From Mytilus californianus (Eukaryota): DNA of 64,000 bases. Position numbers and translations under genes: made by a program. This document shows positions 3,546-60,574 of the stretch, piece after piece; position 1 is the first letter of the stretch, and every line of letters starts with the position of its first letter. The notes beneath the pieces are model-generated. The model was given only the letters and a program-made list of their open reading frames with translations, was not told the DNA's origin and made no database searches. Where the stretch lies: contig NW_026262712.1 of the NCBI RefSeq assembly GCF_021869535.1, positions 115,568,001-115,632,000 on the forward strand, given 5' to 3'.

Positions 3546-3714
3546 ATATATAGTGATGATCCACCTTAAGAATATCTGTACCACCACTATATTGTTGACT
3601 GCTTTGCTGGCTTGTACATAAACTAACTGCTTTACGATTACTTGAAGTTTGTTTCTTCGTCCGGAAATGGGCGCATTATGTGCCTTTTTAATAATTTCTG
3701 AACGTTTTTTCATT

Positions 3715-4110
3715 ATATAGGATACATGTATGACCTTTGCCTAACCAATAAATGATTTAATTCTCGTTATATATGATAAATGTATGACCTTTGCCTAACC
3801 AAGGACTCATTGTATATGATGAATGTATGACCATTGCCTACAATGAAATTTTGTTTTCATTATATATGATAAATGTATGACTTTTGTCTAACCAAGGAAC
3901 GATTTCTCACTACATATGATACATGTATGACCGTGGCATAACTCATTATATATGATACATATATGATCATAGCCTAATCAAACAATGATTTCTCATTAAA
4001 TATGATACATGTATGATCGTAGCCTAACTAAGCAATCAATGATTTCTAATTATATATATGATACATGTATGATCATAGCCTAACCAAGCAATGATTTCTC
4101 ATTATATATG
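3715..4110. repeat. Minisatellite, ~50-bp unit x ~8
   Basis: ATGATACATGTATGACC..GCCTAACCAAG..ATGATTTCTCATTATAT repeated with periods of 35-56 nt. Confidence 0.9.
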
Positions 4111-4450
4111 ACAGTCAGAAATTCTGTGGCAAAACAACTATCTTTTAAGCAGTGTGGTTACGGCGTATTAATGTTTTCGACATTTTTTTTTATGAGAGTC
4201 ACTTTTCTATTGCTCTCGTGTCATCGGTTTTCCCATTAGTATGATCAAAATATAGACATTGAATGTGGGAAGGAAGTTCTATCACGCGTATATAATATAC
4301 AAATATTACATGCGATTTTTCTACTTTTAGATACTAACTTAGAATAGACCCGAGAAAGTGTTTTCTTCCGGCCAGTTGATACTTATTTAATAACCTGAAC
4401 ACAATGCATGATCAATATTTTTTGTCAGTTTGCTAGCGGAGTCTACAGAT

Positions 4451-5275
4451 ATGAGTTCTAGTCATCATTCGGATAAGTGTAAAGGAATTACTCTGCTAAA
4501 TCGGAACGTCCATTCTGATAAAGAAAACGATGATTATGACGTCATATATCATGAAGCATCTGATGCTAATATGAATATCAGTGACGACAGATATGATGGA
4601 CACTACCAAGGCCTGGAGAAAAACAGAGGAGAGATGAACTATGACACCCTACAAACGTTAGACAAGAAAACAAAGGATAGAAGACTGTTCAGATGGAAAG
4701 TGTTGTCGGCCTCCCTCTTATAACTGTCATTAACACTAATTGGATGGACTCTTTATCTGTATTATGGATACTTTCCGAAAGATTATCATAAGAAGGGTTT
4801 TCCTTACGAAAATTGTACAATGAATGATTATTCTACCAATTCAGAAGCTTCACCGAATTATACCTGGTACAGAGCTGGATATAAACCGTGTCGTGAAGGC
4901 TGGAATTTTAATGATAAGTCTTGTGGATGTTATTTTATAAGTAATATATCATTGACATGGACCGACGCAAACGAATTCTGCAGACAAATGTCTTCTTGTC
5001 TGACTAACATTTTGTCTCGTGAAGATATGAACTGGATAGTAAATATTGCAAATGACTCTGCGTGGCTCGGTGGCAGTCAAAATGGCCAAGTGTATCAGTG
5101 GGAGTGTCAACAATACAACTATCATAAACAAATTAGTTCAAACTCACCACTTTGGGCCAATGGAGAGCCCAAACCAGGAAATACAACACAATGTGTTCAG
5201 ATTTGGAAGCTTCAGACAGGGTTCGGGTTAGACGACAACGACTGTAACTTATCAAAACGATTTGTTTGCAAATGA
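4451..5275 (+). pseudogene. Type II ITAM-bearing C-type lectin paralog with an in-frame nonsense codon (probable pseudogene)
   Basis: Colinear with 9120-9980. TAA at 4721-4723 replaces TTA (Leu) at the start of the TM helix; the frame stays open through the TM and a complete CTLD to TGA 5273-5275. The ITAM YQGL-x8-YDTL is retained at 4604-4651. Confidence 0.85.
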
Positions 5276-5689
5276 CTGGTGCCTTTAATCAAGTAAAGAA
5301 AGCGGGATATATTTGTCATATATATTAAGATATAAACAAGACTTTTGCAATTGTATACAGTTTTTTGTTTTGTTGTTGTCTAATTTTAAAATGAAAATTT
5401 AGAAAATTTTGGTTGTACTTAGATGAAAAAATGTGTACCCAGTGTACAATATTTGTTTTTTATTTTTGTAAAAGTACACTTAAGTATGAACTAATAAAAT
5501 TCTTAAATCCCAAAAGACGAGTTTCACAGTATATCTGGTAGCGGTCTAGTGGAATAGCAAGTAGCATTAATATAACATTATCATGAATGTACAGTTTTGT
5601 TACTGGCCGTTAAGCATCTATCAATCAATTAATCGATCAAATTCTAGGCCTAGGACTTTTGTCGATAAAATATTCATGAAGTTTGTATT

Positions 5690-7375
5690 CGAATGTGAAC
5701 TAAATTGTGCTTCTGTAAGATAAATTGATTCACAATGTGAAATTCTGATCGGGTGATGTTGGAACTTGAATTCGAAATGACATATGTAATGGATTTGATG
5801 TAACAATTGCATGTAATGACCCTAAGGGGGTTTTATGGATTAAACTGGAAAATAAAACCTGTGTACATAACGTTCTTAATGTCTGTGTTGTTTATCTGCC
5901 TCCCGAAAATTTCAAACGTGCAGTTAACGTCCATAAGAATACAAAAAAAAAATGACCATAGCACAATAACAAAGGAGGGATGTATAAATACCGAGCCACG
6001 CCAAAAGGATATTACCAAAAATGGACTAAACAGTAAAGGTTAGTAATTTACAAAGACAAATAAAAGAACAATATAACACGTAATGAAGTGATAAAAAACG
6101 TCAGTACCTATAATCCATACTTCAAGACCATCATGTATTATTTATGGAGTTGAAACGGAATATTTATCAACAAGGTCTTGGTATCTTCAAATGGACTTTT
6201 TTTAGAAAAAGGACGAGACGTTCTTTGACATAATCCGACTTCATCAACCTTCTGCCCAGACACTGGTGACGTTTTATAAAGAGTAGCAGCTGCAAGCTCT
6301 TGAATGAGTTGGGAAATGTATATCCAATAAGCAGGTGAAATTGGTATATTGCTGCTAAGGTGAGAAAAATTTATAATTTCAAATTTGAAATCGTCTCGTT
6401 TGTCATAGATTCTGGTACTGAGATGACCGCTTATGTCAAATTTGAGGTATAAGTCTAAAAAATTAGGCAGAGGAATTTGTTTCTGTTGTTTCTGGAGGAT
6501 ATATTAATGGAACCCAATCAGAAAAAGTTTGGATTGTTAATGGAAACAACATCATCAATATATCTGAATGTGAAATTAAATGATCTGGCTTCTTTGATCT
6601 TCTTGTTTTTGACAAGTGTCTGAAGGTACTCCGACTCATATGAAAATAAGAAGAGGTCGGCAAGGAGAGGCACACAGTTCGTTCCCATAGGAATACCGAT
6701 AATTTGTTGAAAAGTCTACCTCCAAATTCAACAAATATGTTGTCAATAAGAAACTCCAGCATACTGATCACTTGTTCATCTGTGTAGCATGATTTACCTT
6801 TTTGTTCACTAAACACAAAATATGCCGTATGGTATCCTAAATTAATAAATTTATAGCGTATGCTACCATTTTTATATTGAATGCATTTTGGATTATTTCT
6901 TGTAGACGATTTTTTAATTTCAAATGGGGAATAGTGGTATACATTGTTGAAAAATTAAAAGTTTTGATAAGATTAATTTCAGAGAAAGATCGAGATTTAA
7001 AATTATCCAGATATTCTTTAGCGTTTTTTAGAGTCCACATATGGTTAATACCACTACGCGAGTAAAGAGTTTCACAGTATTCTTCTATATTTTTGGCGAC
7101 TGGAATAGCAGATGTTAAGACTTTGCAGATTCAATCACTGGTATTGATAATCTTCCAGACAGACATTGTAGACTTTCAATATAACATTTATGAAAATTAT
7201 TTTGTGAATTTCTTACCTATGTGAGCTGTTGTATTTTAAATGGTAGAAACACACTATTTATGTATCAACTCGCGATTTAAGTGTCGTTGATTACTACGTA
7301 GTACCATAAGAAATGCTGGATATGTTCAAGCAATTTAAAGTCACAGGAACTAGTTTAATTATAGAGAAAATATTG
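5690..7375 (+). mobile_element. LINE endonuclease-region relic (5690-5943 and ~7080-7375), split by a Penelope-like insertion
   Basis: Both pieces align with the uninterrupted LINE relic at ~10330-10980 (e.g. GGCGACTGGAATAGC.GATGTT.AGACTTTGC.GATTCAATCACTGGTATTGATAATCTTCCAGACAGA at ~7096 and ~10666). Confidence 0.75.
5944..7075 (-). mobile_element. 5'-truncated, frameshifted Penelope-like retroelement (RT)
   Basis: The minus strand encodes TFNFSTMYTTIPHLKLKNRL and MLEFLIDNIFVEFGG, plus frameshifted IPMGTNCASLLADLFL/RYIDDVVS motifs. Its 3' part (6080-6310) is the reverse complement of 45380-45610. Confidence 0.85.
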
Positions 7376-7789: not shown

Positions 7790-8315
7790 TCTAGAAGATC
7801 TGTACATTATATCGACTGCGCTAGACTTAGCATCAACAGCGCTAGAATTTTAATAAATCTACAGCGCTAGACTTTACTTCACCAGCGCTTGACGTTTGAT
7901 CTACAGCGCTGGACTTTAGATCTTCAGCGATTGACTTTAAATCTTCAGCGCTGGATTTAAATCTTCAGGACAGGAATTTACATCACCAGCACTAGACGTT
8001 TGATCTACAGCACTGGCATTTACATCTCCAGCGATTGACTTAAAATCTCCAGCGCTGGACTTTACATCTACAGCGCTGATCTCTACAACAACATAGCTGA
8101 ACTTGTGATCTACAGCGCTGGAATTCACATCTGAAGCGATTGACTTAAAGTCTACAGCGCTAGACTTTAGATCTTGAACGCTGGTATTTATACCTACAAT
8201 GGACTTTACATCTTTCGCACTCGACTTGAGATCTACAGCGCTAGAATTAAGATATTCAGCGTTGGATTTTATAAAACAAAAATCTTTATTTGTTTGACAT
8301 CAACAAGGCTCCGTA
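7790..8315 (+). repeat. 21-bp minisatellite array (TCTACAGCGCTGGACTTTACA) ending in a conserved ...ATCAACAAGGCTCCGTAG terminus
   Basis: Clear 21-nt periodicity; the same terminus follows each of the three arrays in this window. Confidence 0.9.
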
Positions 8316-8414: not shown

Positions 8415-8727
8415 ATTACATGTACTTTGACTTTAAATCTTCAGCGCTTGACTTTACATCTACAGCACCGGAATTCACATTTGCAGCACTGGAGTTTACA
8501 TCTTCAGCACTGGACTTTATATCTACAATGTACTTTACATCTCCAGCGCTCAACTTGGGATCTACAGCGCTAGAATTAGGATTTTCAGCGCTTGACTTTA
8601 GAACTGCTGCTCTGGATTTAAATCTTCAGCGCTGGACCTGGATCTTCAGTGCTTATTTTTAATCTACATCGCTTGACTTTATAAAACACAACTCCTTATC
8701 TGTTTGAGATCAATAGGGCTCCGTAGA
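8415..8727 (+). repeat. Second copy of the 21-bp array with the same terminus
   Basis: TCT(A/T)CAGCGCT(G/T)GACTTTA units followed by GAGATCAATAGGGCTCCGTAG. Confidence 0.85.
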
Positions 8728-9119
8728 AGAGCAATTTTAGCATAAACATAGAAATGGGTGACTGGCAAAATCTATAAATGTATTATGAATTTTCCGTTTT
8801 TGTATCTGTATGCAGTAATCTAAAGATTAACATGTAGAAATTTCTGTGTAACAAGTTTCTAAAACATTTATCTCGATGAATAATGAAAATGAGACTATCA
8901 TTTATCTGTATGAATATTTCAAAAAAACGAAAAAGAAGAAGAAGAAAATTCTATAACGCCTATGTAATGTACAAATATTGCATCGGATATTTCTACTTTA
9001 AAATATTTATTTAGAATAGTCCGAAGGAAGTGTTTTCTTCCTGTCAGTTGATTATACTTATTTAATAACATAATGCACAATTTATATATTTTGTCTGTTT
9101 GGTAGCGGAGTCAACAGAT

Positions 9120-9980
9120 ATGAGTTCTGCTTGTCACTCAGATAAGTGTAAAGGAATTACTCTACTAAATTTAAACGTCCATTCTGATGGAGAAAACGAT
9201 GATTATGACGTCATATATCCAGATGGGTCTGACGCTAATAGGGAGAAAGAGGAGAAAGCAAATAGCAGTGAAGACAGATATGATGGACACTACCAAGGCC
9301 TAGTGAAAAACAGAGAAGAGATGAACTATGCCACCCTACAAACGTTAGATAAGAAAACAACGGATCGAAGACTGTTCAGATGGAAAGTGTTGTCGGCCTC
9401 CCTCTTATTACTGTTATTAACACTAATTGTATGGACTCTATATCTGTATTTTGGATACTTTCCGACAAATTATAATAAGAAGGGTTTTCCTTACAACAAT
9501 TGTACAATGCATGTGAATTCTATTAATTTAGAAGCTTTATCCAAATATACCTGGTACAGAGCTGGATTTAAACCGTGTCGTGAAGGCTGGGTTTTTAAAG
9601 ATAAGTCTTTTGGATGTTATTATATTAGTAATACAACATTGGCATGGACCGACGCAAACAAATTCTGCAGAAACATGTCTTCTTGCCTGACTAACATTTT
9701 GTCTCTTGAAGATATAAACTGGATAGGACACCTCACAAATAACCACACGTGGGTCGGTGGTAATCAAAATGGCTACGTGTATCAATGGGAGTGTCAACAA
9801 TACAACTATCAAATGCAAATTAGTCCATATTCAGCACTTTGGGCCAGTGGAGAGCCCAGACCGGGTAATAAAGCACAATGTGTTCAGATTTGGAAGCTTG
9901 AGACAGGGTTCGGGTTAGATGACCATGACTGTAACCTACCAAAGCGATTTGTTTGCAAAGCAGTACCTTTATTCAAATAA
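9120..9980 (+). CDS. Intronless type II transmembrane C-type lectin receptor with a cytoplasmic ITAM (286 aa from ATG 9120)
   Basis: Single ORF: acidic cytoplasmic tail with YDVI and D-G-H-YQGL-x8-YATL (9291-9338), basic stretch RRLFRWK, TM VLSASLLLLLLTLIVWTLYLYFGYF, neck, and a long-form CTLD (PCREGW...GCY...AWTDANKFC...WVGG...LWASGEPRPGNKAQCVQ...LDDHDC...RFVCK). AATAAA at 10064-10069. Confidence 0.92.
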   Translation: MSSACHSDKCKGITLLNLNVHSDGENDDYDVIYPDGSDANREKEEKANSSEDRYDGHYQGLVKNREEMNYATLQTLDKKTTDRRLFRWKVLSASLLLLLLTLIVWTLYLYFGYFPTNYNKKGFPYNNCTMHVNSINLEALSKYTWYRAGFKPCREGWVFKDKSFGCYYISNTTLAWTDANKFCRNMSSCLTNILSLEDINWIGHLTNNHTWVGGNQNGYVYQWECQQYNYQMQISPYSALWASGEPRPGNKAQCVQIWKLETGFGLDDHDCNLPKRFVCKAVPLFK

Positions 9981-10329
9981 AGAAGGCGGAATATAATTGT
10001 CATATATATTAAGGTCCTTTACAACTGTATGTAGTTTTCAGGTTTGTTTTTGTAGAATTTTAAAATAAAAATGTAGAAAATTTGGTTTCTACTTAGATGA
10101 CAAATGTGTACCCCGTGTACAATATTTGTTTATGTTTGTAAAAGTACATTTAAGTATGAACTAATATCATTCTTTAATCCAAACAGACGAGTTTCACTGT
10201 ATAATTGGCTTAGCAGTCTAGTGCAATAGCAAGTTACATTAATATAACATTATCCTGAATGTACAGTTTTGTTACTGGCTGTTAAGGATATATCAATTAA
10301 TCGATGAAATTTCAGGCCTATGACTTTTG

Positions 10330-12455
10330 GTCGAGAAAATATTCATAGAGTTTGTATTCGAATGTGAACTAAATTGTGCTCCTGTAAGAAAAATTGATTC
10401 ACAATGTGAAATATCGATCGGATGGTGTTGGAATTTTAATCCGAAAGGACATATGTAATGAATTTGATGTAACAATTGCAGATAATGACACTGAGGGGAT
10501 TTTTTGGATTAAACTGGATAATAAACCTGCGCAAATAACTTTCTTTATATGTGTGTTTATCTTCCTCCCTAAAATTCCAAACGTGCAGTTAACGTCCATA
10601 AGGTCTTTGACAATTAATGACTTAAGTGTACACTGTACCTATATGAAACGCCTTCTATATGTGTGGCGACTGGAATAGCCGATGTTCAGACTTTGCGGAT
10701 TCAATCACTGGTATTGATAATCTTCCAGACAGAGATGGTGTAGACTTTCAATGTAACAGTTATGGAAAGTTTTTTTTGTGAATTCCCAGTTACCGATGTG
10801 AGCTGTTATATTTTAAATGGTAGAACACGCTATTGAATAACTACACTTATGTCATGTTTGTCCTGTTTGTGTCAACTAGCGGTTTAATTGTCGTTGACTA
10901 CTGCATGGTACCGTACGAAATCCTTGATATTTTTGATCGATTTAAAGTTACAAGAAATAGTTTAATTATAGAGCAAATATGTGCTAATTGTAAATTTGAC
11001 CTTCAAAAGATCATCCAAAATCACTCTTTACTTACTTGGGAAATAATGTTGAATTTTAGCGAAAGTAATAAAAGGTTGCGCCATTCAAAAATAATCGTTA
11101 AACCGAAAGCAAGTATGATATATGGAATTTATCGAAAGACTAGCTCAGTTTGGAACCGACTTTAAATGAAAATGATAGTAAATTTGGAAATTTTAAGTGT
11201 AACGCAAAACAATATAAACAACATTGCGATAAAGATGGAGTCTTAAATAAAAGGGAGTGTGATTTCTCAAATATGTTTAATAAAACTCATGATAGTGTCG
11301 TAAATATCTGTGAAAATAATGCAGATGTTTAATATGATGATATGTGAGATTGTGAAATATCTCTTGAAGAAGTATTTAATGTTTTAAAATGTTCAACAAA
11401 CGGTTAATCACTTCGATATGACAAAATACCAGTTGATTTGTACAAGAACCAAACTATGTTAAAGGCCATAACTCGAGTGTTCAACGTTTGTTTTAACTCT
11501 GGTAAAGTTCCAGTTATGTGGTCAAACGGGATTATAACGCCTATTCCAAAAAGCTCAACATCAGATCCGAGTGATCCTTTATCGTACTGTGGTATTACTT
11601 TAGCATCGGTGTCCTACAAACTGTATTGTGGAGTATTGAACTCACATCTAACGTACAAGCTTGATGAAATTGACTTTCTATGTGACGAACAAAACAGTTT
11701 TCGAAAAGGGCATAGTACTGTCAGCCATTAAAGTACACAGTCTACCATTATAGAAACTGGAAAACTTCGTAACTAGAGCCTCTATTATTTAATATCTATA
11801 TTAACGATCTTGTTTTTGAGGTTAAGAAATTAGACATAGGTATAGACATTACAAACCATAAAGTGTGGTTATATGCAGATGATATTGTATTTATTACTGA
11901 AAATGAGAGTGATTTACAAAAAATGTTAGATGTTTTGAATATATGGTGTTGTTCTAATGACCTTACTGCTAATTTAAAAAAAAATCTATAATAGTACATT
12001 TTAGAACACAGTCTGTATCTAGATCGAATTTTCCATTTGTGTTTAATGGTAACAATATTGATATTCTTTCCCAATATACATATTGAGGTGTATTTTTTAC
12101 TGAGCTTTTAAGTTATGATAATATGGCTAAAGCAGTTGCTAAAGCCCCTAGTAGACCGTTGGGTTTGTTGATATCTAAATGTAAAGCTAACGGTGGTTTT
12201 CAATATTGTACATTTACAAAATTGTTTGATATACGTGTATGGTTTTTTATAAACTATGGTGCCTCTATATGGGGAACACGTGATGTTTTTACGTATAAAA
12301 GTGTACAAAATAAAGCCATGCGCTTTGTCATGGGTGTAGGGAAATACTCACCTAATATGTCTTTGTATGGTGAAATTGGCTGGATGCCATGCAAAATCAA
12401 ACAGTGGACTAGTGCTTTAAAAAATTGGACAAGATTAGATAAAATGAATGATGTT
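10330..12455 (+). mobile_element. Degraded non-LTR retrotransposon (LINE, CR1/L2-like group): APE endonuclease and RT relics
   Basis: Endonuclease-like SDGVGILIRKD...EGIFWIKL; RT-like WSNGIITPIPKS..DP.DP..YCGITL, DEQNSFRKGHST, LFNIYINDL and YADD (11872-11883); downstream YGASIWG...VQNKAMRF.MGVGKY..N..LYGEIGW. Many stops and frameshifts. Confidence 0.88.
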
Positions 12456-13139
12456 AGAGTCCGTTTGTCCGTTCGACCTTCCACCCGTTTTTTTGTTCTT
12501 CCAATAAATATTTTCGTCACACTCTTCTCGAATACTATTAAACAAAATGGATTTTTATTTGGTCAGCAGATTGACAATGAAGAGTTGTAACGTGTGAGCA
12601 CTTGTCGGATATCTCAGAAACCTAGTTCCTGGATTTCCTTTCCATAAATTTGAAATATGTAGGAGCAGGAACTGTTTACCCTTCCATTCTCTCGGTTTTT
12701 ATTGAGGTTCCTGTTGCTAATCATTTAGTTTTCTGTGTAGTGGTTTGTGAACGTTTGGCTGTGTCTATGTCGATTTTTCTTTACTACCATGATCTTGTCT
12801 GTTTGTATTGGACTTGTGGTTTTTGTTTGCTTAATCTCTCTCTTTTTACCCGTATCGCATCGTAATTTACGAGGTCTATAAACAATGTCACCTTAAGCAT
12901 AGTCATGTGTGATATCCTGGTTGAAATAAAATTTATACCTGGTCATTGACCCATTATTTTAAAAGATTATACTTTTTTGAAAGTTTTCACTCCTTTATGC
13001 TTCTTCTTTTCTCAAGCGATATTTGTTATATGGGTCTTAATTGACCCACTTTCCTCAAATGGACAAGCCAAGACATCTTTTCTCACGAGTATACATCTAG
13101 TATGTTTTTTAATTTTAGTTCATTTATATGTTTTGGAGT

Positions 13140-14583: not shown

Positions 14584-14638
14584 ATGATGAATTATCATTA
14601 TATAACAATGGCGATATGTTTTTTATTCGAAGTTCAAG
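14584..14638 (+). CDS. Exon 1 (signal peptide) of galaxin-like dicysteine-repeat protein
   Basis: MMNYHYITMAICFLFEVQ(G) followed by a strong donor CAAG|GTAAGA at 14639; phase 1 matches the acceptor at 17793; V-x-G signal peptidase site. Confidence 0.7.
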
Positions 14639-14889
14639 GTAAGATATACTGTATACTGTTTTCACATTTTATACGTTTTTTTTTTAATTGCATGGCAGTG
14701 AAAGGAACGTTAAAGATGTTTAACAATTTCTTGATGAACCAAATTATTCTTTATGAAATCGACATGAGGTCAGTTATTAGAAATAAACTATAAGAATACG
14801 GCCACCTTTAGTCAAAGTATTTTGGAAATGCTTAATAGAAGCAAATGTAATTAACTAGAAAATGACACCGTTTTTCATATAACGGTTCA

Positions 14890-15290
14890 AACATTTATCG
14901 CACCCCTGGAAAATTAGTGATGTTATGATTGGTTTAACGCCGTCATGTGGTGACCCGCTATGGATCCTTATCGTACCCCGTATAAATTAGTGACGTTATG
15001 TTTGGTTGAACATGGTGACCCCTATGGATCCGTATGGGGTCAGTAGATTTCATATGGGGTTCATGACGTCATTTCTACTATTAATGGTGACGTCATCTAT
15101 TAATGTTATTGCATTTAATAGTTTATTTTTATGTGAAATTTAGCATGAAAGTGCTATGTGCAATAAATACGTTAGACAGTTCACTAGTGACCCTCTAAAG
15201 AACCATAGAGGGTACGTAAAATCATTAGAGGGTGAGGCCGAATTACCAACCCTCCATGGATCCGTACGGGTTCATTAGCAAACCATGTAA
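14890..15290. repeat. Internally repetitive/palindromic interspersed element, related to 35450-35575
   Basis: Repeated TGGTGACCC..TATGGATCC motifs; GGGGTCAGTAGATTTCATATG shared with the 35450 hairpin. Confidence 0.55.
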
Positions 15291-15317
15291 CTTATAAAAG
15301 ATATACAAGTTTACGTT

Positions 15318-15601
15318 TTCAAGGGGGGGGGGGGGGGGGGGGGGGTTTGGGGGTTATGGTTTTTGTCTGCCAAAAGCGCGAACATTTTTAAAAAATTTCG
15401 ACGCTATCAATCAAATTATTTTTTTTCAAAATTTAACACTATAAGGTATGGGGAAAATCTGGATACTGAATATATTTTTTTGTCATCTGCTTGACCACAA
15501 TATTTTTTCATCAAATTGGGGATCAGAATATTTTTTTAGGAAAAAACCATAACCCCCCCCCCCCCCCCCCCCCCCTTTGAAGTTAGATGGTCGTTCCCTT
15601 A
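15318..15601. mobile_element. MITE-like element bounded by G23 and C23 tracts
   Basis: G23 at 15323-15345 and C23 at 15553-15575; inner GGTTATGGTTTTTT pairs with AAAAAACCATAACC. Confidence 0.75.
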
Positions 15602-17054
15602 GTGCTATAAAAAAAAGAAGATGTGGTACAATTGCCAATGAGACAACTCTCCACAAGAAACTATGTAGACAGCTCTCTCACAGGCAAAATACCTTACTAT
15701 AAAATATAATTGCATACACTACAGACACGGTGACACGTCTTCTGTATCCACACAGCACGAGTAACAAACACTGCAGTAAATATAAAAATAAGAAGATGTG
15801 GTATTTTACAATCAGTAACGTTTATATAACGGTCCTTGAGAACATATAGAGTTAATTTTTTGTGCTAGTTTACAATCAGTAACATTCATATAACGGTCCG
15901 TCAAGAACATATAGAGTTTAAACTTTGTGCTAGTTTACAATCAGTAACTTTCATATAATGGTCCGTCGTGACCATTGCTACTATTTACTATTAAATTCAC
16001 ATTTAACATTTCGTTACTAAGGAGTTAGCCTCCATATTGACTTTCTGAAATCCATTTATGTTCAATTTATGCTATGGAATCTAAAATGAAATATCACCTA
16101 CCTCAAAAACTTCATTTTAATGAGATTTTAACCAAATTTGAAACGGAATAATCTTCATATTGGGAGTTTTCATTCGTATGACGTCAATTTTCCGATGAAG
16201 TTAATGCGCCAAGCTAATTCATGAAATTTCGCGGAATTTTCTTTTATAGTAAATTTATACATTTTCCATGCTTTAATGCATTATCTCTTTTTGTTATTCA
16301 TTAGGATGGAAATAACAGTTAGGTATTTGTTTTTCAATCTCAATGTGATTGTACCCCATACATCTGTATCGCGCATGCATTGATCACAATGATGGTTACG
16401 AAAATTGTTTCGGCAACATGTTCTATCGAAGTTTAAACCAAGGGAAAAATGCTAACGGACCATTCCAATTCAAGTATTTGTAGATATACAAATCATATAA
16501 GAATTATAAGAAAATGTTTTGCATATAACTTTCCGTTGTGAACACACAGAGTTAAAATCTTTGTGCTAGTTTACAATGAATAATCTCCTTATAGAATAGT
16601 CAACTTTCGAGTTCGTTGCATTTCCGTCAAAAATATAGTTTTAGTGAACATCATTCGTGCGTTTAGGGGAATCGTCACTTCCTCCCCATGTTGAGCGAGC
16701 GGTTGAAAAAAAATATGATGTTATATTGCACGAATTATTAGGAAAATTAAATTCTTATAATTGATAATCAGCACTGCTGTCATTATGTAATTGTGATTAA
16801 GTACCCACGGAGCAGTCATTATTTCTAGTTTATCTTGCATAATGACGATCACGAAGACGCTTGATGAACTTGAATAGTGCAGGGATACAAGCAATCCCAT
16901 CTTTCTGGTAAATGCCATCATAAAACGCGCATAATTGTCGAACTTTTCCTGTGAAGGACATCACTCGAAAGTGGTCTATGACATAGTAAATGTAGTTATG
17001 AATAATGTCGTTATCTATATCGAAATATCTATAAATGATTCAAAAATAATAGTG

Positions 17055-17690
17055 CCGTATTTTCTTTGGTTCAGGTATATTTTGAAGGTCTTTGAATGGA
17101 ACACATAATCCTTTGTATAATACCGTTTTTTCTTTGGTTCAGGTATATTTTGAAGTCTTTGAATGGAACACATAATCCTTTGTATGGAACACATAATCCT
17201 TTGTATGATACCGGTTTTTCTTTGGTTCAGATATATTTTGAAGGTCTTTGAATGGAACACATAATCCTTTGTATTATACCGTTTTTTCTTTGATTCAGAT
17301 ATATTTTGAAGATTTTTGAATGAAACACATAATCCTTTGTATAATACCGTTTTTTCTTTGGTTCAGGTATATTTTGAAGTCTTTGAATGGAACACATAAT
17401 CCTTTGTATGATACCGTTTGTTCTTTGGTTCAGGTATATTTTGAAGGTCTTTGAATGGAACACATAATCCTTTGTATGATATCATTTTTCTTTGGTTCAG
17501 GTATATTTTGAAGGTCTTTGAATGGAACAAATAATCCCTTGTATGATACATACCGTTTTTTCTTTGGTTCAGGTAAATTTTGAAGGTCTTTGAATGCATA
17601 TGGAACAATAAACCTTTGTATGATACCGCTTTTTCTTTGGTTCAGGTATATTTTGAAGTTCTTTGAACGAAACAAATAATCCTTTGTAAC
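17055..17690. repeat. 68-bp minisatellite x ~9 in intron 1 of the galaxin-like gene
   Basis: TCAG(G/A)TA(T/A)ATTTTGAAG at 17071, 17139, 17227, 17295, 17363, 17430, 17497, 17568, 17642. Confidence 0.95.
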
Positions 17691-17793
17691 ACATCACCTT
17701 TTCGAATTGTCATTTCAGTAAACCTTTTTTTTTTATTCAATGAAGCATGTGCCATACGAAAGCATAAGGCCTTCTTTGCTTTTTCTATTCTAG

Positions 17794-18024
17794 GAGCTAA
17801 AATGCGATGTTTGATGGAAAGTTATGACAGAAATATACAGGGATGTTGTCACGGAAACGTATACAACAGATCAGTTAACGGTTGCTGTAATAACGAGTTG
17901 TATAATATATCACACGAAGGCTGCTGCCATGATATCAACATCTATAAGATACCATTCCAAGGATGTTGTGGGGATATGATATATAACAAACATCAGGATG
18001 CCATACAATATGAATGTTGTAATG
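17794..18024 (+). CDS. Exon 2 of galaxin-like protein (five Y-x5-8-CC repeats)
   Basis: Polypyrimidine acceptor TTTTCTATTCTAG (AG 17792-17793) and donor AATG|GTGAGG (18025); symmetric phase 1-1 exon of 231 nt encoding ...YDRNIQGCCHGNVYNRSVNGCCNNELYNISHEGCCHDINIYKIPFQGCCGDMIYNKHQDAIQYECCN. Confidence 0.88.
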
Positions 18025-18991
18025 GTGAGGCTTTATGTACAAACATTACTCATAATTTACACACATGTAACAAAAGAGCAAACCCATACCGTATTGTAAG
18101 CTATAAAAGGCCCTTGCATGGAGAATTATGGAACATTTCGCATGAAAAACCTAACGGACTCTTCTAATATACACTATACTATATTAAAACAATAAACGAA
18201 AACAACATAGCAGACAGCAAACATCGACAACCACTAAATTACAGGCTCTTGGCTTGAGACAGACACATACATAATGTGGTGGTGTTAAGCATGCTGGTTA
18301 GCGTTCACGCTCGTCTAACACGAGACAATGATGTACAAATGTAACTACACAAACTATAAAAAAACAAACTTTAAAGAGCAGCTGGAAAAGGGATCAACTC
18401 ATCAGATCGACACAGTACATAATACATATCACAAAAATAGAAACAAAAGACATCACAGATCAAAGTTAATTTGCAGTTACTGAAAACTAGTTCTAAGTTA
18501 CGCTATTTTATTAATGAACATAGTTGCCCTTTCATATCCCTTTTGAAGAAGGGAATTGGTTGATGCACCTTTCATATTTATAAATACTGTCCTTCCTTTC
18601 ATGGTCTATCACTGTTATCTCGCATGCTGCATGCAGTAGCGCTATAGAAAATTCAAATGATACTAGTTTCAATAAGACAGTTAATGTATTTTGCTTGTTT
18701 ATTTGGTTGAATTGTTAAGGTTATTAAGATTTTTCGTTATTTATGTGTATAGTTGGTGTTACATGTTAACACATTAGACGTGAATCGAATGAACGACACT
18801 ATGTAATTCGACAAACAAATACAATATTTGAGTAGATGTATTCAATGTCCAACTGTTTATGTATCAAACACAAAACGCAATCAACATATAGGTTTTTCAA
18901 TTCATGTGAAATCTTTTTCTTTTGACACAAATGAAAACTCATTGTGCATCCACTTGAGAAGTAACTGATTGATTTTTGTTTCTTTTTTCAG

Positions 18992-19179
18992 GTCAAATAT
19001 TCAATACTGCTTTGGAAAAATGTTTTGAAAATACCGTCAGGAACAAAACCACTGCTATACCAGAAAGGAAACCAAACAACAGTGCAGCCATTGTCAGGGA
19101 GAATGTTTCACAAAAAATGTTGATATGCTTCTTAGTTTTGACATGTTTGACAATCAACTGCACCCCGACCCTTTCTTGA
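18992..19179 (+). CDS. Exon 3 (last) of galaxin-like protein; GPI-signal-like C-terminus
   Basis: Acceptor TTTGTTTCTTTTTTCAG (AG 18990-18991), phase 1; continues the repeat register (CCN-G-QIFNTALEKC) and ends NNSAAIV...MLICFLVLTCLTINCTPTLS*. AATAAA at 19215-19220. Confidence 0.85.
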
Positions 19180-23802: not shown

Positions 23803-24909
23803 TTAGGTAAATTTTAAATAGTCTTGTAATGTTGTTGGTAAGGGCAAGTCTACTATACTAGATGGAGAGCAAGTCCTCAGAATCGCTGCTCGACATATTA
23901 CCATCAAGTTTAGGCGAGGAACTTGAAAGGAAGCATATTTTGTTGAAAAATTCGGATTCCAGATTTGTAATTCTGAATCGCACAGAGAGAAAATAGGCAC
24001 AATAGTTTCTACGTTTTGATTGAAACACTTTTCATCCTTGAGTAAAGGCGACATGTCCTTACAGGAACATATTATTAAATTCACAATACTATTGGTGTTT
24101 TTGTCTCCAGTAATGAAGCAATATGCTAATACATCTTTACTACGACTTGCAATTAGTTTGCAACTGTTGTTTCCGTTATAAGATTTGCATTGTATATCTG
24201 GAAATTTTATATCGGATTGTTTATACCACTTTACTTTGTTATTTGTCACATTATAACCCCTTTTCATGTTTTTGAAATACAAATGTTTTAAGCATACAAC
24301 TGAACGATTCGAATTTCCATGTATTAGTGCAATAACTGAGCAAGGATAACTTGGATGAAAAACAAGATTTACCCCATCTCTGTCTGGGATCATCGAATCA
24401 TATGTTCTCTCTTCAGTCATCGACTGTTCTGATATTGAATACCAAACATAACAATATCTAGGCGATGCTTCCATAGGACATCTGAATAGAAACATGTCTA
24501 AATCTGGAGATATCAAGCATTTTAATGGTTCTTTTAAAGGGTTAATATGTCTCCACCAATCAAATGTACATACATGACAATCAACAAAATGAAATGTTTC
24601 ATTTGCTGAGTTGAAAATCATTAACATGACATCAGTACTAGTCCATTCAACTTCCAACCGATACTGAAATACATATACTGGAAAACTATATCCAATGCAT
24701 AACGGTTTTTCAAAAAATATCTGACCTCTTAACCTTACAGGAAGTTTGTATTTCTTAACGATTGTTTGTTCGTGTTCCAAAGATACAGTGGCGCGTACTG
24801 GTCCATTGAAGTGAATAGTACGAAAGTAGTGGTCATCAAACTCACTTCTGATCAACTCATTCCCAGTACACATCAAAAGTGTTGTGTCAACTATCTTTGT
24901 TGTATCCAT
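23803..24909 (-). CDS. Intronless SOCS-box protein (368 aa) with an uncharacterised N-terminal domain; putative Elongin BC-Cullin5 substrate receptor
   Basis: Longest ORF in the window; C-terminal NLMVICRAAILRTCSPSSIVDLPLPTTLQDYLKFT matches the BC box (xLxxxCxxxI) and Cul5 box (LPxP). The inverted paralog is conserved codon-for-codon. Confidence 0.88.
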   Translation of the reverse strand: MDTTKIVDTTLLMCTGNELIRSEFDDHYFRTIHFNGPVRATVSLEHEQTIVKKYKLPVRLRGQIFFEKPLCIGYSFPVYVFQYRLEVEWTSTDVMLMIFNSANETFHFVDCHVCTFDWWRHINPLKEPLKCLISPDLDMFLFRCPMEASPRYCYVWYSISEQSMTEERTYDSMIPDRDGVNLVFHPSYPCSVIALIHGNSNRSVVCLKHLYFKNMKRGYNVTNNKVKWYKQSDIKFPDIQCKSYNGNNSCKLIASRSKDVLAYCFITGDKNTNSIVNLIICSCKDMSPLLKDEKCFNQNVETIVPIFSLCDSELQIWNPNFSTKYASFQVPRLNLMVICRAAILRTCSPSSIVDLPLPTTLQDYLKFT

Positions 24910-51290: not shown

Positions 51291-52401
51291 ATGAATACAA
51301 CAAAACTTGTTGACACAACGCTTTTGATGTGCACTGGGAATGAGCTGATCAGAAGTGAGTTTGATGACCACTACTTTCGTATTATTCACTTAAAGGGGCC
51401 GGTATGTGCCACTGTTAATTTATCTGCGGAACACGAACAAACAATCGTTAAGGAATACAAACTTCCTGACAGGTTAAGAGGTCAGATATTTTTTGGGAAA
51501 ACATTATGCATTGGGTATAGTTTTCCAGTATATGTATTTCAGTATCGATTGGAAGACGAATGGGTTGATGTCATGTTGATGATTTTAAATTCAGAAAATG
51601 AAATATTTCATTTTGTTGATCACCATGCGATGATACATGAATGGTGGAGAGAAACTAATCCTTTAAAAGAACCATTAGAATGTTTGATATCTCCAGATTT
51701 AGACATGTTTCTATTCAGATGTCCTATGGAAGCATCGGCTAGCCTCGGTTTGGATTGGTTTTCAATATCTGAAAAGTCTATGTCGACGACTGGAGAAAGA
51801 ACAAAAATTTCAAATCTTAAGGCTAAAGATGAAATAAGTTATATCTTTCATCCAAGTCATCCTTGTTCAGTCATTTCAGTGTTACATGTTAACTCTGGCC
51901 ATTTACGTATAGGCTTAAGACATTAAAATTCTAAAAACATGGATGTGGTTTATAGGATTTCAGGTGGGTGGTTGTGTAGACAATATGGACAACCTGATAT
52001 AAAATTTCCAGATATACATAGCAAATGTAACATTGTCAAAAACAGTTGCAAACTAATTGCAAGTCGTAGTAAAGATGTATTAGCACAGTGCTTCATTACT
52101 CAAGATAAACACACCAATGGTATTGTGCATATAATCATATATTTCTCTAATGACATGTCGTCATTACTGAATGAGGAAAAGTGTTTAAGTCAAAGCGTTG
52201 AAACTATTGTGCCTTAATTCTCACTGTGCGATTCAGAATTACAAATCTGGAATCCGAATTTTTCAACAAAATATGCTTCCTTTCAAGTTCATCGTCTAAA
52301 TGGTTATGTGTCGAGCAGCGATTCTGAGGACTTGCTCTCCGTCTAGTATAGAAGACCTGCCCTTACCAACGTCATTAAAAGAATATTTAAAATTTATCTA
52401 A
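51291..52401 (+). pseudogene. Pseudogenised paralog of the SOCS-box gene
   Basis: Colinear with 23803-24909; in-frame TAA at 51924-51926 and 52215-52217, and a 5-nt deletion at ~52300 that frameshifts the BC box. Confidence 0.92.
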
Positions 52402-59457: not shown

Positions 59458-60039
59458 CTGAAAGAAGGAAATTGAGTTAACCAATACACACTCTCAGATC
59501 CAAATTAATAAATTTGTATTTTCATTTTCAAGCGCTTCGTTGATACTTCTGCTGGTTGAATGATAGTCCCCGAGAGTATCGAGTATCATCAGCTCAGTTG
59601 TTAGTGTTGCAGTACTAACATGGTTTAGAGCAAACATTTCTTAGATTCTTCGCTGCAAAATGTAGAAATTAGGACGAAACTAAGGTTTTTACTCCCTCAG
59701 AAAAAGTTTTATGGATTTGGCTTCTCTTTTTATAGATATAAGAGGATGTGGTATGAGTGCCAATGAGACAACTCTCCATCCAAGTCACAATTTGTGTCCA
59801 CTTCATTCATATAACTTCTCCCATATTTTATACATCTTTCGCTTTCAAAGTTTTGAGCTTGAGCGTTCTTGGTGAAGGTAATCTATATGTGTATTTTCAT
59901 TATCATATTGCATACAATTTGTTTAAATTTAAGAATATATACAAATGACCATTAAATCCATTTAACTAAGAAGCCTAGATCATAAGTATGTACATTTCTA
60001 AAATCAAACGGACCAGTGATTATTTCTATGTAAACTTAC

Positions 60040-60574
60040 TTTGCCTTTAAAATATCTAAATGACCATTCTCCTGTAGCATCAACAATGCACGATTGATAT
60101 CATCTCTATAAGGAGCACCACGTGGGAAACCAAAACTATACTGTTTATCACCAAATCCTTGATGTATCGATTCCAACGTAGTGCAGTGCTCCATGGCATA
60201 GTGATCGTTCATTACACTGTCGTCCAAAAACACATATTTGTCGTTTTCCCCTTGAACCATTTTCCGTGCATCCTCTCTCTTATCCGGCATGATATCGACT
60301 TCATTTAACTTCATGTGAATCCACATTCTTTTATAAAGGTCATTATCAGACTTTGCAAAGAATTTTTCCAAATCGCTTCCTTTTAGAACACCGTAACTGA
60401 TCTTCTTTTGAGTGACTAAGGCATCCACAGTCTTGACTCTGTTGTCAATATTTTTTAGCGTGAGGAAAGCAGCAAGGTTTGCCGTGTAAGCAGTAGTTAT
60501 GATAAGAGTACAGAACCAATAAATAGCAACAATTGTTCTCATGGAAGTTGTTTGAGGTGCGTATTCAGTTCCAC
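60040..60574 (-). CDS. iGluR-like exon: pore loop end, M3 and S2
   Basis: Acceptor TGTTACAG|, phase 1; YWFCTLIITTAYTANLAAFLT, ISYGVLKGS, YVFLDDSVMN, KQYSFGFPRGAPYRDDINRALLMLQENGHLDILK; donor AA|GTAAGT. Confidence 0.95.

Follow-up and report, generated by a model that had tools for sequence, protein, structure and literature searches.

Kinases of the Syk family, with tandem SH2 domains that bind ITAMs, are older than adaptive immunity. To our knowledge, few invertebrate receptors feeding these kinases are known, the known examples being Draper in flies, the hemITAM lectins of oysters and the Alr proteins of Hydractinia. Among mammalian C-type lectins, Dectin-1 (CLEC7A), CLEC-2 and DNGR-1 (CLEC9A) are type II proteins with a single C-type lectin-like domain (CTLD) of group V and a tyrosine motif in their own N-terminal tail, where an acidic stretch precedes YxxL/I; they have one functional tyrosine and engage Syk as dimers. 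Dectin-1 also demonstrates that a two-tyrosine ITAM-like tail can work through one tyrosine only. The group II lectins, such as DC-SIGN (CD209), Mincle, Dectin-2, DCIR and ASGPR, are type II as well; Mincle and Dectin-2 depend on a borrowed ITAM, that of FcRgamma, and DCIR carries an ITIM. In the oyster Crassostrea (Magallana) gigas, CgCLec-HTM and CgCLec-TM1 are described as hemITAM receptors and reported to signal through Syk-ERK-Rel/GSK3beta to IL-17 and TNF (PMC13027682, PMC12842671), in agreement with the description of CgCLec-HTM as hemITAM-type in an earlier reading of the present locus made from the sequence alone (the sequence-only reading). The transmembrane (TM) domain of CgCLec-HTM is C-terminal (PMC12842671), and those of CgCLEC-TM2 and CfLec-2 are N-terminal (PMC13027682, PMC12842671). 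In Drosophila, Draper has an ITAM in its own tail that is read by the tandem-SH2 kinase Shark (PMC6219719, PMC5138034). Invertebrate lineages having CARD-CC/Bcl10 are reported to possess Syk/ZAP-70 homologs whose SH2 domains bind ITAMs (PMC5978004), and the abstract of the related preprint 10.1101/046789 names mollusks as one of the Bcl10 lineages.

The window analysed here is a stretch of 64,000 nt from Mytilus californianus (NCBI RefSeq assembly GCF_021869535.1, contig NW_026262712.1, positions 115,568,001 to 115,632,000 of the forward strand). Its translation gives an intact ORF of 286 aa plus stop at 9120-9980 on the + strand, as the sequence-only reading had accurately described. As modelled, the product is a single-pass type II receptor with a disordered acidic tail, a signal anchor, a short stalk and a C-terminal CTLD. 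Like CgCLec-HTM and CgCLec-TM1, it is a membrane receptor of a bivalve, its single CTLD combined with a tail that bears a tyrosine-based activation motif; these two are described as having a single-tyrosine hemITAM, whereas the mussel protein is type II and has two canonically spaced YxxL. Neither word nor profile searches show a close sequence kinship between them, and a literature search, with most subscription journals outside its scope, turned up hemITAM reports and general reviews but no mollusc C-type lectin receptor described with a full ITAM of two tyrosines. With Dectin-1, CLEC-2 and DNGR-1 the mussel protein shares the type II orientation, the single CTLD, a tail motif of its own and the acidic stretch before YxxL/I, its DDYDVI resembling the DEDGYxxL of the mammalian hemITAM receptors. 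Its CTLD, however, is nearest group II, and the relation to the mammalian hemITAM lectins is one of analogy, with no orthology. The "Dectin-like" topology of the sequence-only reading is therefore right as to architecture but not as to kinship, in sequence or in fold. The group II proteins give the best CTLD matches in both sequence and structure, but the canonical EPN/E/WND calcium-sugar site is replaced by EPR/A/LDD in the mussel protein. Draper is a type I receptor with EGF repeats; it lacks a CTLD, and the spacer of its ITAM is longer. Closer at hand, the M. coruscus protein CAC5388395.1 (P0011) is like the window protein in being type II, in having a related CTLD (LLDD motif) and in sharing YDVIHHE in the tail, but it has 473 aa, its TM helix and CTLD are separated by EGF-like repeats, and the spacer of its YQSL-x12-YDVI is beyond the canonical range.

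The same self-contained architecture of a type II CTLD protein with an ITAM was also met in vertebrates. Motifs were looked for in the 23 non-family matches whose first TM helix is preceded by 24 or more N-terminal residues, and two canonical ITAM patterns were found, both in predicted and, as far as we could see, uncharacterised proteins: E-S-P-YQEL-x7-YSVL in the tail of the axolotl CD209 antigen-like protein C (XP_069489907.1) and YIGL-x7-YSNI in that of a pipefish protein (XP_057691271.1). Their tails are unrelated in sequence to the mussel tail and they keep canonical QPD/EPN-WND-type sites, and the architecture probably arose independently in these animals and in the mussel. These two tails show that the type II lectin-ITAM architecture is not unique to the mussel lineage, so the contrast with vertebrates drawn earlier is true of the mammalian receptors that have been studied well, but cannot be extended to all vertebrates.

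Topology, fold and ligand site

The cytoplasmic tail (9120-9386, residues 1-89) is acidic and predicted to be disordered, on the basis of its composition and of an AlphaFold2 model built from a 67-sequence alignment, where residues 1-69 have pLDDT below 55. The sole hydrophobic segment of the protein comprises residues 90-114 (9387-9461), with a Kyte-Doolittle value of 2.3 over 19 residues; it is preceded by the basic flank KKTTDRRLFRWK, overlaps a confident helix of the model (residues 70-112, pLDDT 86-97) and is the predicted signal anchor. No N-terminal hydrophobic segment or signal peptide was found, the peak 9-residue hydropathy within the first 40 residues being 1.3. The TM helix is flanked by charges of +6/-2 N-terminally and +2/0 C-terminally, and of the five N-glycosylation sequons four are found beyond the helix on its C-terminal side, as are all nine remaining cysteines. 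On these features the type II topology proposed earlier stands as a prediction. The extracellular stalk (9462-9569, residues 115-150) is disordered in the model, with low pLDDT, and contains an NCT sequon and the odd Cys128. The ectodomain has an odd number of cysteines, and the unpaired Cys128 may form an interchain disulfide and so a dimer.

The CTLD is located at 9570-9962 (residues 151-281). Pfam Lectin_C (PF00059) matches residues 173-280 with 38.3 bits against a cut-off of 22.6, a sequence search of the PDB returns 64 CTLD chains at E<=0.01 with the DC-SIGN CRD as the best (E 5.6e-8), and the model has pLDDT >90 over residues 151-286. In Foldseek the neighbours of the domain are DC-SIGN, DC-SIGNR, SIGN-R1, Mincle, DCIR, MGL and ASGPR, with a TM-score by target of about 0.8 (0.8-0.85 to DC-SIGN, SIGN-R1 and Mincle). 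In addition, C183, C254, C271 and C279 are invariant or nearly so in alignment A4, giving the conserved cysteine framework of a CTLD. The three kinds of search thus agree with the earlier assignment of a CTLD, and by its model the domain is group II-like, of the DC-SIGN/Mincle structural type.

The ligand site is degenerate. Aligned with DC-SIGN, EPN becomes EPR (245-247), Glu354 becomes Ala252 and WND becomes LDD (266-268; N365 is replaced by D267 while D366 is kept), so that three of the five canonical ligands of Ca2+ site 2 are replaced and the EPN/QPD-Glu-WND pattern is lost. The relatives have EPK, and K or T, at the positions of this site. The degenerate site suggests that the ligand is probably bound otherwise than through the classical Ca2+-coordinated sugar site, and the label of a pattern-recognition receptor, given to the protein by the sequence-only reading, is unsupported in view of these replacements.

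Tyrosine motifs of the tail and their conservation

The ITAM block of the tail, D55-G-H-Y58QGL-VKNREEMN-Y70ATL73, is located at 9282-9338 and fits the strict consensus (D/E)xxYxx(L/I)-x6-8-Yxx(L/I), with an acidic residue at -3 of both Y58 and Y70. The textbook ITAM read earlier as D-x-x-YQGL-x8-YATL is therefore confirmed, within a segment predicted to be cytoplasmic. When the 89-aa tail is shuffled, the loose ITAM pattern appears in 0.55% of cases and the strict form with the acidic -3 residue in 0.12%; in a genome with hundreds of lectin genes, these rates make a lone occurrence unlikely yet possible. Upstream in the tail, the acidic YxxI motif DDYDVI (9198-9215, residues 27-32) lies in E25-N-D-D-Y29DVI, which resembles the tri-acidic hemITAM DED(G)-YxxL, and the motif also fits YxxPhi. 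It is present as first described and invariant in the six Mytilus-family tails, but its position is not kept in the distant clade described below, where the aligned residues are GDAI and an ENEYCSI stands nine residues upstream. An ITIM or ITSM reading of the tail was also considered and rejected, the -2 residues of Y29, Y58 and Y70 (D, G and M) being a misfit to (I/V/L/S)xYxx(L/V/I).

Within the genus, the word-index search returned only Mytilus proteins, namely P0002 and P0003 of M. edulis, the fragments P0004, P0006 and P0007 of M. coruscus, and P0001 from Logan run SRR13891810. Among them P0002 has 286 aa and is 81% identical to the window protein. A word search with the tail only (residues 1-125) gave the same four Mytilus proteins and nothing further, and residues 1-120 had no usable match in a language-model atlas. 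All Mytilus relatives carry DDYDVI and YQGL-x8-Y(D/A)(T/A)L in their tails, the spacer being always x8, and Y58, L61, Y70 and L73 are invariant across the six Mytilus-family tails. This conservation by itself says little, because the Mytilus tails are about 80% identical overall and the Nei-Gojobori dN/dS is 0.3-0.7 in the tail, the TM segment plus stalk and the CTLD alike.

More can be learned from a deeply diverged clade. An exhaustive profile search gave only 319 matches at E<=0.001, including a second clade that is represented by P0008, a cluster of 25 members with 290 aa from ENA and JGI metagenome assemblies and from Logan (sample accessions ERZ21930238, ERZ27290497/9 and JGI 3300042738). 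These distant homologs are contiguous 873-nt ORFs on metagenome contigs, with prokaryote-style gene calls. The clade is widened by P0170, which is 83% identical to P0156, and a word search with P0156 found one further Logan protein only. Compared with the window protein, dS is saturated, and the identity is 34% in the tail (25/73), 20% in the TM segment plus stalk and 54% in the CTLD. The distant motif reads D-x-T-YRGL-SCKNVEENN-Y(D/E)TL and retains both tyrosines, both leucines and the acidic -3 residues; YRGL-x9-Y(D/E)TL is present in 9 of the 11 full-length members of the clade, P0170 included. Its spacer of x9, against x8 in Mytilus, is just outside the strict range of x6-8, and in P0008 and P0165 a His replaces the first ITAM tyrosine. 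The tyrosines are thus conserved in the relatives, a point on which the sequence-only reading could have failed, with the x9 spacing in the distant clade and with the exception of these two Y>H proteins. As for the distribution of identity, 11 of the 25 identical tail residues fall in the 19-residue block D55-L73. This concentration is the strongest argument for a constraint on the motif, although the figure is somewhat circular, since an aligner favours tyrosine matches. On the evidence of these alignments, the best we have, the ITAM block appears to be conserved under constraint between Mytilus and the distant clade.

Activating or sorting receptor

We give an even chance to the reading that the protein is an activating receptor, whose own ITAM would be phosphorylated on clustering and would recruit a molluscan Syk-type kinase. 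In such a receptor, clustering driven by the ligand would lead a Src-family kinase to phosphorylate Y58 and Y70, the doubly phosphorylated ITAM would recruit the tandem SH2 domains of a molluscan Syk/ZAP-70-type kinase, and the downstream responses may be of the ERK/Rel type, by analogy with those described for the hemITAM lectins of oysters. What our data show is the domain architecture, the transcription, the one-exon gene structure and the conserved motif, while the phosphorylation, the Syk binding, the cell type and the ligand are inferred. What argues for an activating receptor is that the ITAM is rare in shuffled tails and is kept both in Mytilus and in the distant clade, together with the precedent of the lectin-Syk pathway in oysters. 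Against it are to be set the x8 versus x9 spacing, the Y>H members, the frequent lesions and low read numbers reported below, the fit of the motifs to YxxPhi and the precedent of Dectin-1, where one tyrosine does the work.

This fit to YxxPhi leads to another explanation, that the tyrosine motifs are sorting signals of an endocytic or recycling lectin-type receptor working via AP-2, like ASGPR or DC-SIGN, which we consider unlikely. YDVI, YQGL and YATL all match the endocytic/sorting pattern Yxx[LIVMF], and the nearest solved domains include those of the endocytic group II receptors DC-SIGN(R), MGL and ASGPR. The tail of ASGPR H1 uses a YQDL-type sorting signal, which we also count for sorting. 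Moreover, the distant clade has four YxxPhi motifs, some of them at non-homologous positions, as expected if any YxxPhi suffices. However, for a sorting signal a single tyrosine is enough, and it requires no partner at a fixed distance, whereas here two YxxL stand 8-9 residues apart, the acidic -3 residue is kept at each YxxL across clades whose tails are otherwise 34% identical, and the block between the tyrosines (KN..EE.N) is likewise conserved. Sorting and kinase-coupled signalling are in any case compatible roles, and the receptor might do both.

Tandem copy and loss-of-function lesions

The locus lies in a tandem segmental duplication of about 4.67 kb on the + strand, the first copy of which is at 4269-5856 and the second at 8941-10525 and beyond. 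The two are recognized from the direct-repeat families D3, D5, D6, D8, D9 and D11, which are 81-90% identical and spaced by 4669-4687. The first copy contains a paralog of the receptor gene at 4451-5275 on the + strand, the tail of which retains DDYDVI and YQGL-x8-YDTL. This copy keeps the same frame throughout, but TTA is changed to TAA at 4721-4723, inside the TM segment. The motif conservation in the paralog noted earlier is thus present, though in a copy with an in-frame stop, which by its sequence is a pseudogene or a null allele. The nearest intact relative of this copy is P0001 (Logan contig L001), with which it has a 6-aa tail deletion in common.

Lesions are also found elsewhere in the family. 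Over 992 nt the X1 contig shows not a single mismatch to the intact gene, yet 4 nt are missing at 9143; this deletion ends translation after about 16 codons and so represents a null allele expressed in another individual. The 230-aa P0003 of M. edulis might be taken for an isoform without a TM helix, a reading we reject, because the stalk of this second M. edulis copy contains a +1 frameshift and the frame is regained in the gene model by leaving out the TM region. In M. coruscus, the model P0004 terminates in the frame-shifted KISLLDVII. The frameshifts of M. edulis and M. coruscus come from long-read assemblies and may be assembly errors, while the TAA substitution at 4721-4723 and the 4-nt deletion at 9143, which is derived from Illumina data, are probably real. 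Judged from these copies, the receptors form a small mytilid family that duplicates in tandem, loses copies quickly and is dispensable.

This turnover bears on a further explanation, that the motif is a lineage-specific accident without signalling role in a dispensable, drifting lectin-like family that is nearing pseudogenisation. It would account for the dN/dS of 0.3-0.7 in all regions, for the at least four independent lesions in copies or alleles, for the Y>H variant at the first ITAM tyrosine and for the low read depth, and about one such motif is expected by chance per few hundred tails. On the other side, no part of the tail is better conserved than the motif block between the two clades, for which dS is saturated, intact copies are present in at least three sequence sources, the gene is transcribed, and the long-read frameshifts of M. 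edulis and M. coruscus may not be lesions at all. We therefore hold an accident to be improbable.

Turning back to the activating receptor, we propose, as a tentative and possibly mistaken view, that a lophotrochozoan lineage has built, independently of vertebrates, a self-contained activating immunoreceptor, in which a type II lectin-fold ectodomain is joined to its own two-tyrosine ITAM and would be read by the ancestral Syk without an adaptor. Mytilid clades that diverged long ago would have kept the motif, with fast turnover of ectodomain and copy number as in NK-receptor families. If this is true, the mussel ITAM lectin-fold receptor would offer a simple entry point to the wiring of the Syk pathway in lophotrochozoans, and the family might also be counted among the variable and dispensable immune genes of mussels. 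The impact is limited, since bivalve lectins with tyrosine motifs that signal via Syk have already been described and the same architecture is present in predicted fish and amphibian proteins. What appears to be new here, as far as the sequences tell, is a bivalve tyrosine-motif lectin receptor that is type II and has a full ITAM, the coupling of which to Syk we infer.

Gene structure and transcription

The coding sequence (9120-9980, + strand, 286 aa plus stop) is a single exon. This one-exon coding, as proposed by the sequence-only reading, is borne out by RNA reads and contigs collinear with the genome, by the M. edulis homolog P0002, which is annotated as one 861-nt exon, and by the contiguous 873-nt ORFs of the distant clade. 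The transcript extends approximately over 9089-10101 on the + strand, as judged from the start of the X2 contig (9089) and the extent of the X1 contig (9106-10101), which gives a 5' UTR of about 31 nt; the X1 contig ends 32 nt past an AATAAA at 10064-10069. About 23-30 nt 5' of the most 5' contig start lies TATTTAAT (9059-9066, + strand), a candidate TATA box that is kept in both copies of the window and in the M. edulis locus (alignment A1) and may serve as a promoter element.

Four sequencing runs were mapped to 8690-10400 (1711 nt). From about 6% of the stranded RNA-seq run X21, the only run confirmed as RNA, came 15 reads covering 9154-9965, with the first mate always on the minus strand, as expected for RNA of the + strand; expression in this run is low. 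The other three, Logan assemblies from a separate study, look like transcriptomes in their behaviour. Depth over 8690-9037 is zero in all runs, and the mapping over 8690-10400 shows no joints and no recurrent loose ends. The gene is transcribed on the + strand, and its transcript of about 1 kb consists of one exon.

An upstream exon changing the topology, which the sequence-only reading had named as a way for it to be wrong, was looked for in the mapped reads and contigs, and none was seen. We find it highly improbable that a hidden coding exon further upstream contributes a signal peptide or other domains and alters the topology or the reading of the tail, since, although 9090-9105, just 5' of the X1 contig start at 9106, is a pyrimidine-rich tract ending in AG, and 7 of the 15 X21 reads extend only partly onto the mapped stretch, the X2 contig and the Logan contig L001 are collinear across the AG, joints and recurrent loose ends are lacking in the mapping, the frame upstream of 9120 closes at the TAA of 9066-9068, and the M. 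edulis annotation and the metagenome gene calls give the same single ORF. A splice acceptor at 9104-9105, with a downstream exon starting there, was rejected on the same collinearity.

Apart from the genes themselves, degenerate 21-nt tandem arrays are located between the two gene copies, at 7811-8173 and 8427-8681.

Disrupted reading frames in the receptor copies

A single change from TTA to TAA, giving a stop at 4721-4723 within the transmembrane (TM) segment, disables the receptor gene's tandem duplicate (window 4451-5275, plus strand). The frame is otherwise open as far as the normal end, RFVCK*, and what is left of the copy is a 90-aa cytosolic ORF with the ITAM. The intact receptor gene (9120-9980, plus strand) is also met in a frameshifted form. 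The only contig from X1, a transcriptome-like Logan assembly, with a depth of 8.5, lacks four nucleotides at 9143-9146 and apart from this deletion has no mismatch over 992 nt. The deletion shifts the frame after codon 8, and the contig therefore appears to represent an expressed null allele from another individual. The stranded RNA-seq run X21 gave 15 RNA reads on window 8690-10400, of which 7 match it over only part of their length, and 27% continue into at least 20 letters that differ from it. No loose end was reported to recur, and the pattern may reflect alleles, paralogs or chimeric reads.

In M. edulis, the homolog P0003 (230 aa) seemingly has no TM helix. Its source locus (L007:3001-3862, CAJPWZ010000846.1) carries a +1 frameshift in the stalk, and the annotated model leaves out the TM segment together with the stalk, thereby regaining the frame.

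Surroundings of the receptor copies

A 21-nt unit makes up two degenerate arrays (7811-8173 and 8427-8681; about 67% matches, 12-17 copies) in the spacer that separates the receptor copies, and these arrays produce long spurious ORFs on both strands. Another tandem array, made of AT-rich units of 50-93 nt, lies directly upstream of the pseudogene copy, at 3710-4111. Directly downstream of the receptor gene are retrotransposon-like ORF fragments (10394-12590, plus strand). The ORF at 11438-11731 is almost identical to the C-terminal part of P0007, a fused M. coruscus homolog model, and therefore the same insertion adjoins the M. coruscus copy, which suggests a close relationship between M. coruscus and the species of the window. 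Farther along, the galaxin-like gene at 14584-19179 corresponds to a Galaxin_repeat gene of M. edulis (L002:1-1008), located about 9 kb from the homolog P0002, which is consistent with conserved synteny.

Among other ORFs in the window, those at 23803-24909 (minus strand, 368 aa) and 51291-51926 (plus strand, 211 aa) are paralogous and have about their first 200 residues in common, the second of the two looking truncated. The 168-aa ORF at 60036-60542 (minus strand), judged by eye, looks like a candidate part of the ligand-binding/channel region of an ionotropic glutamate receptor.
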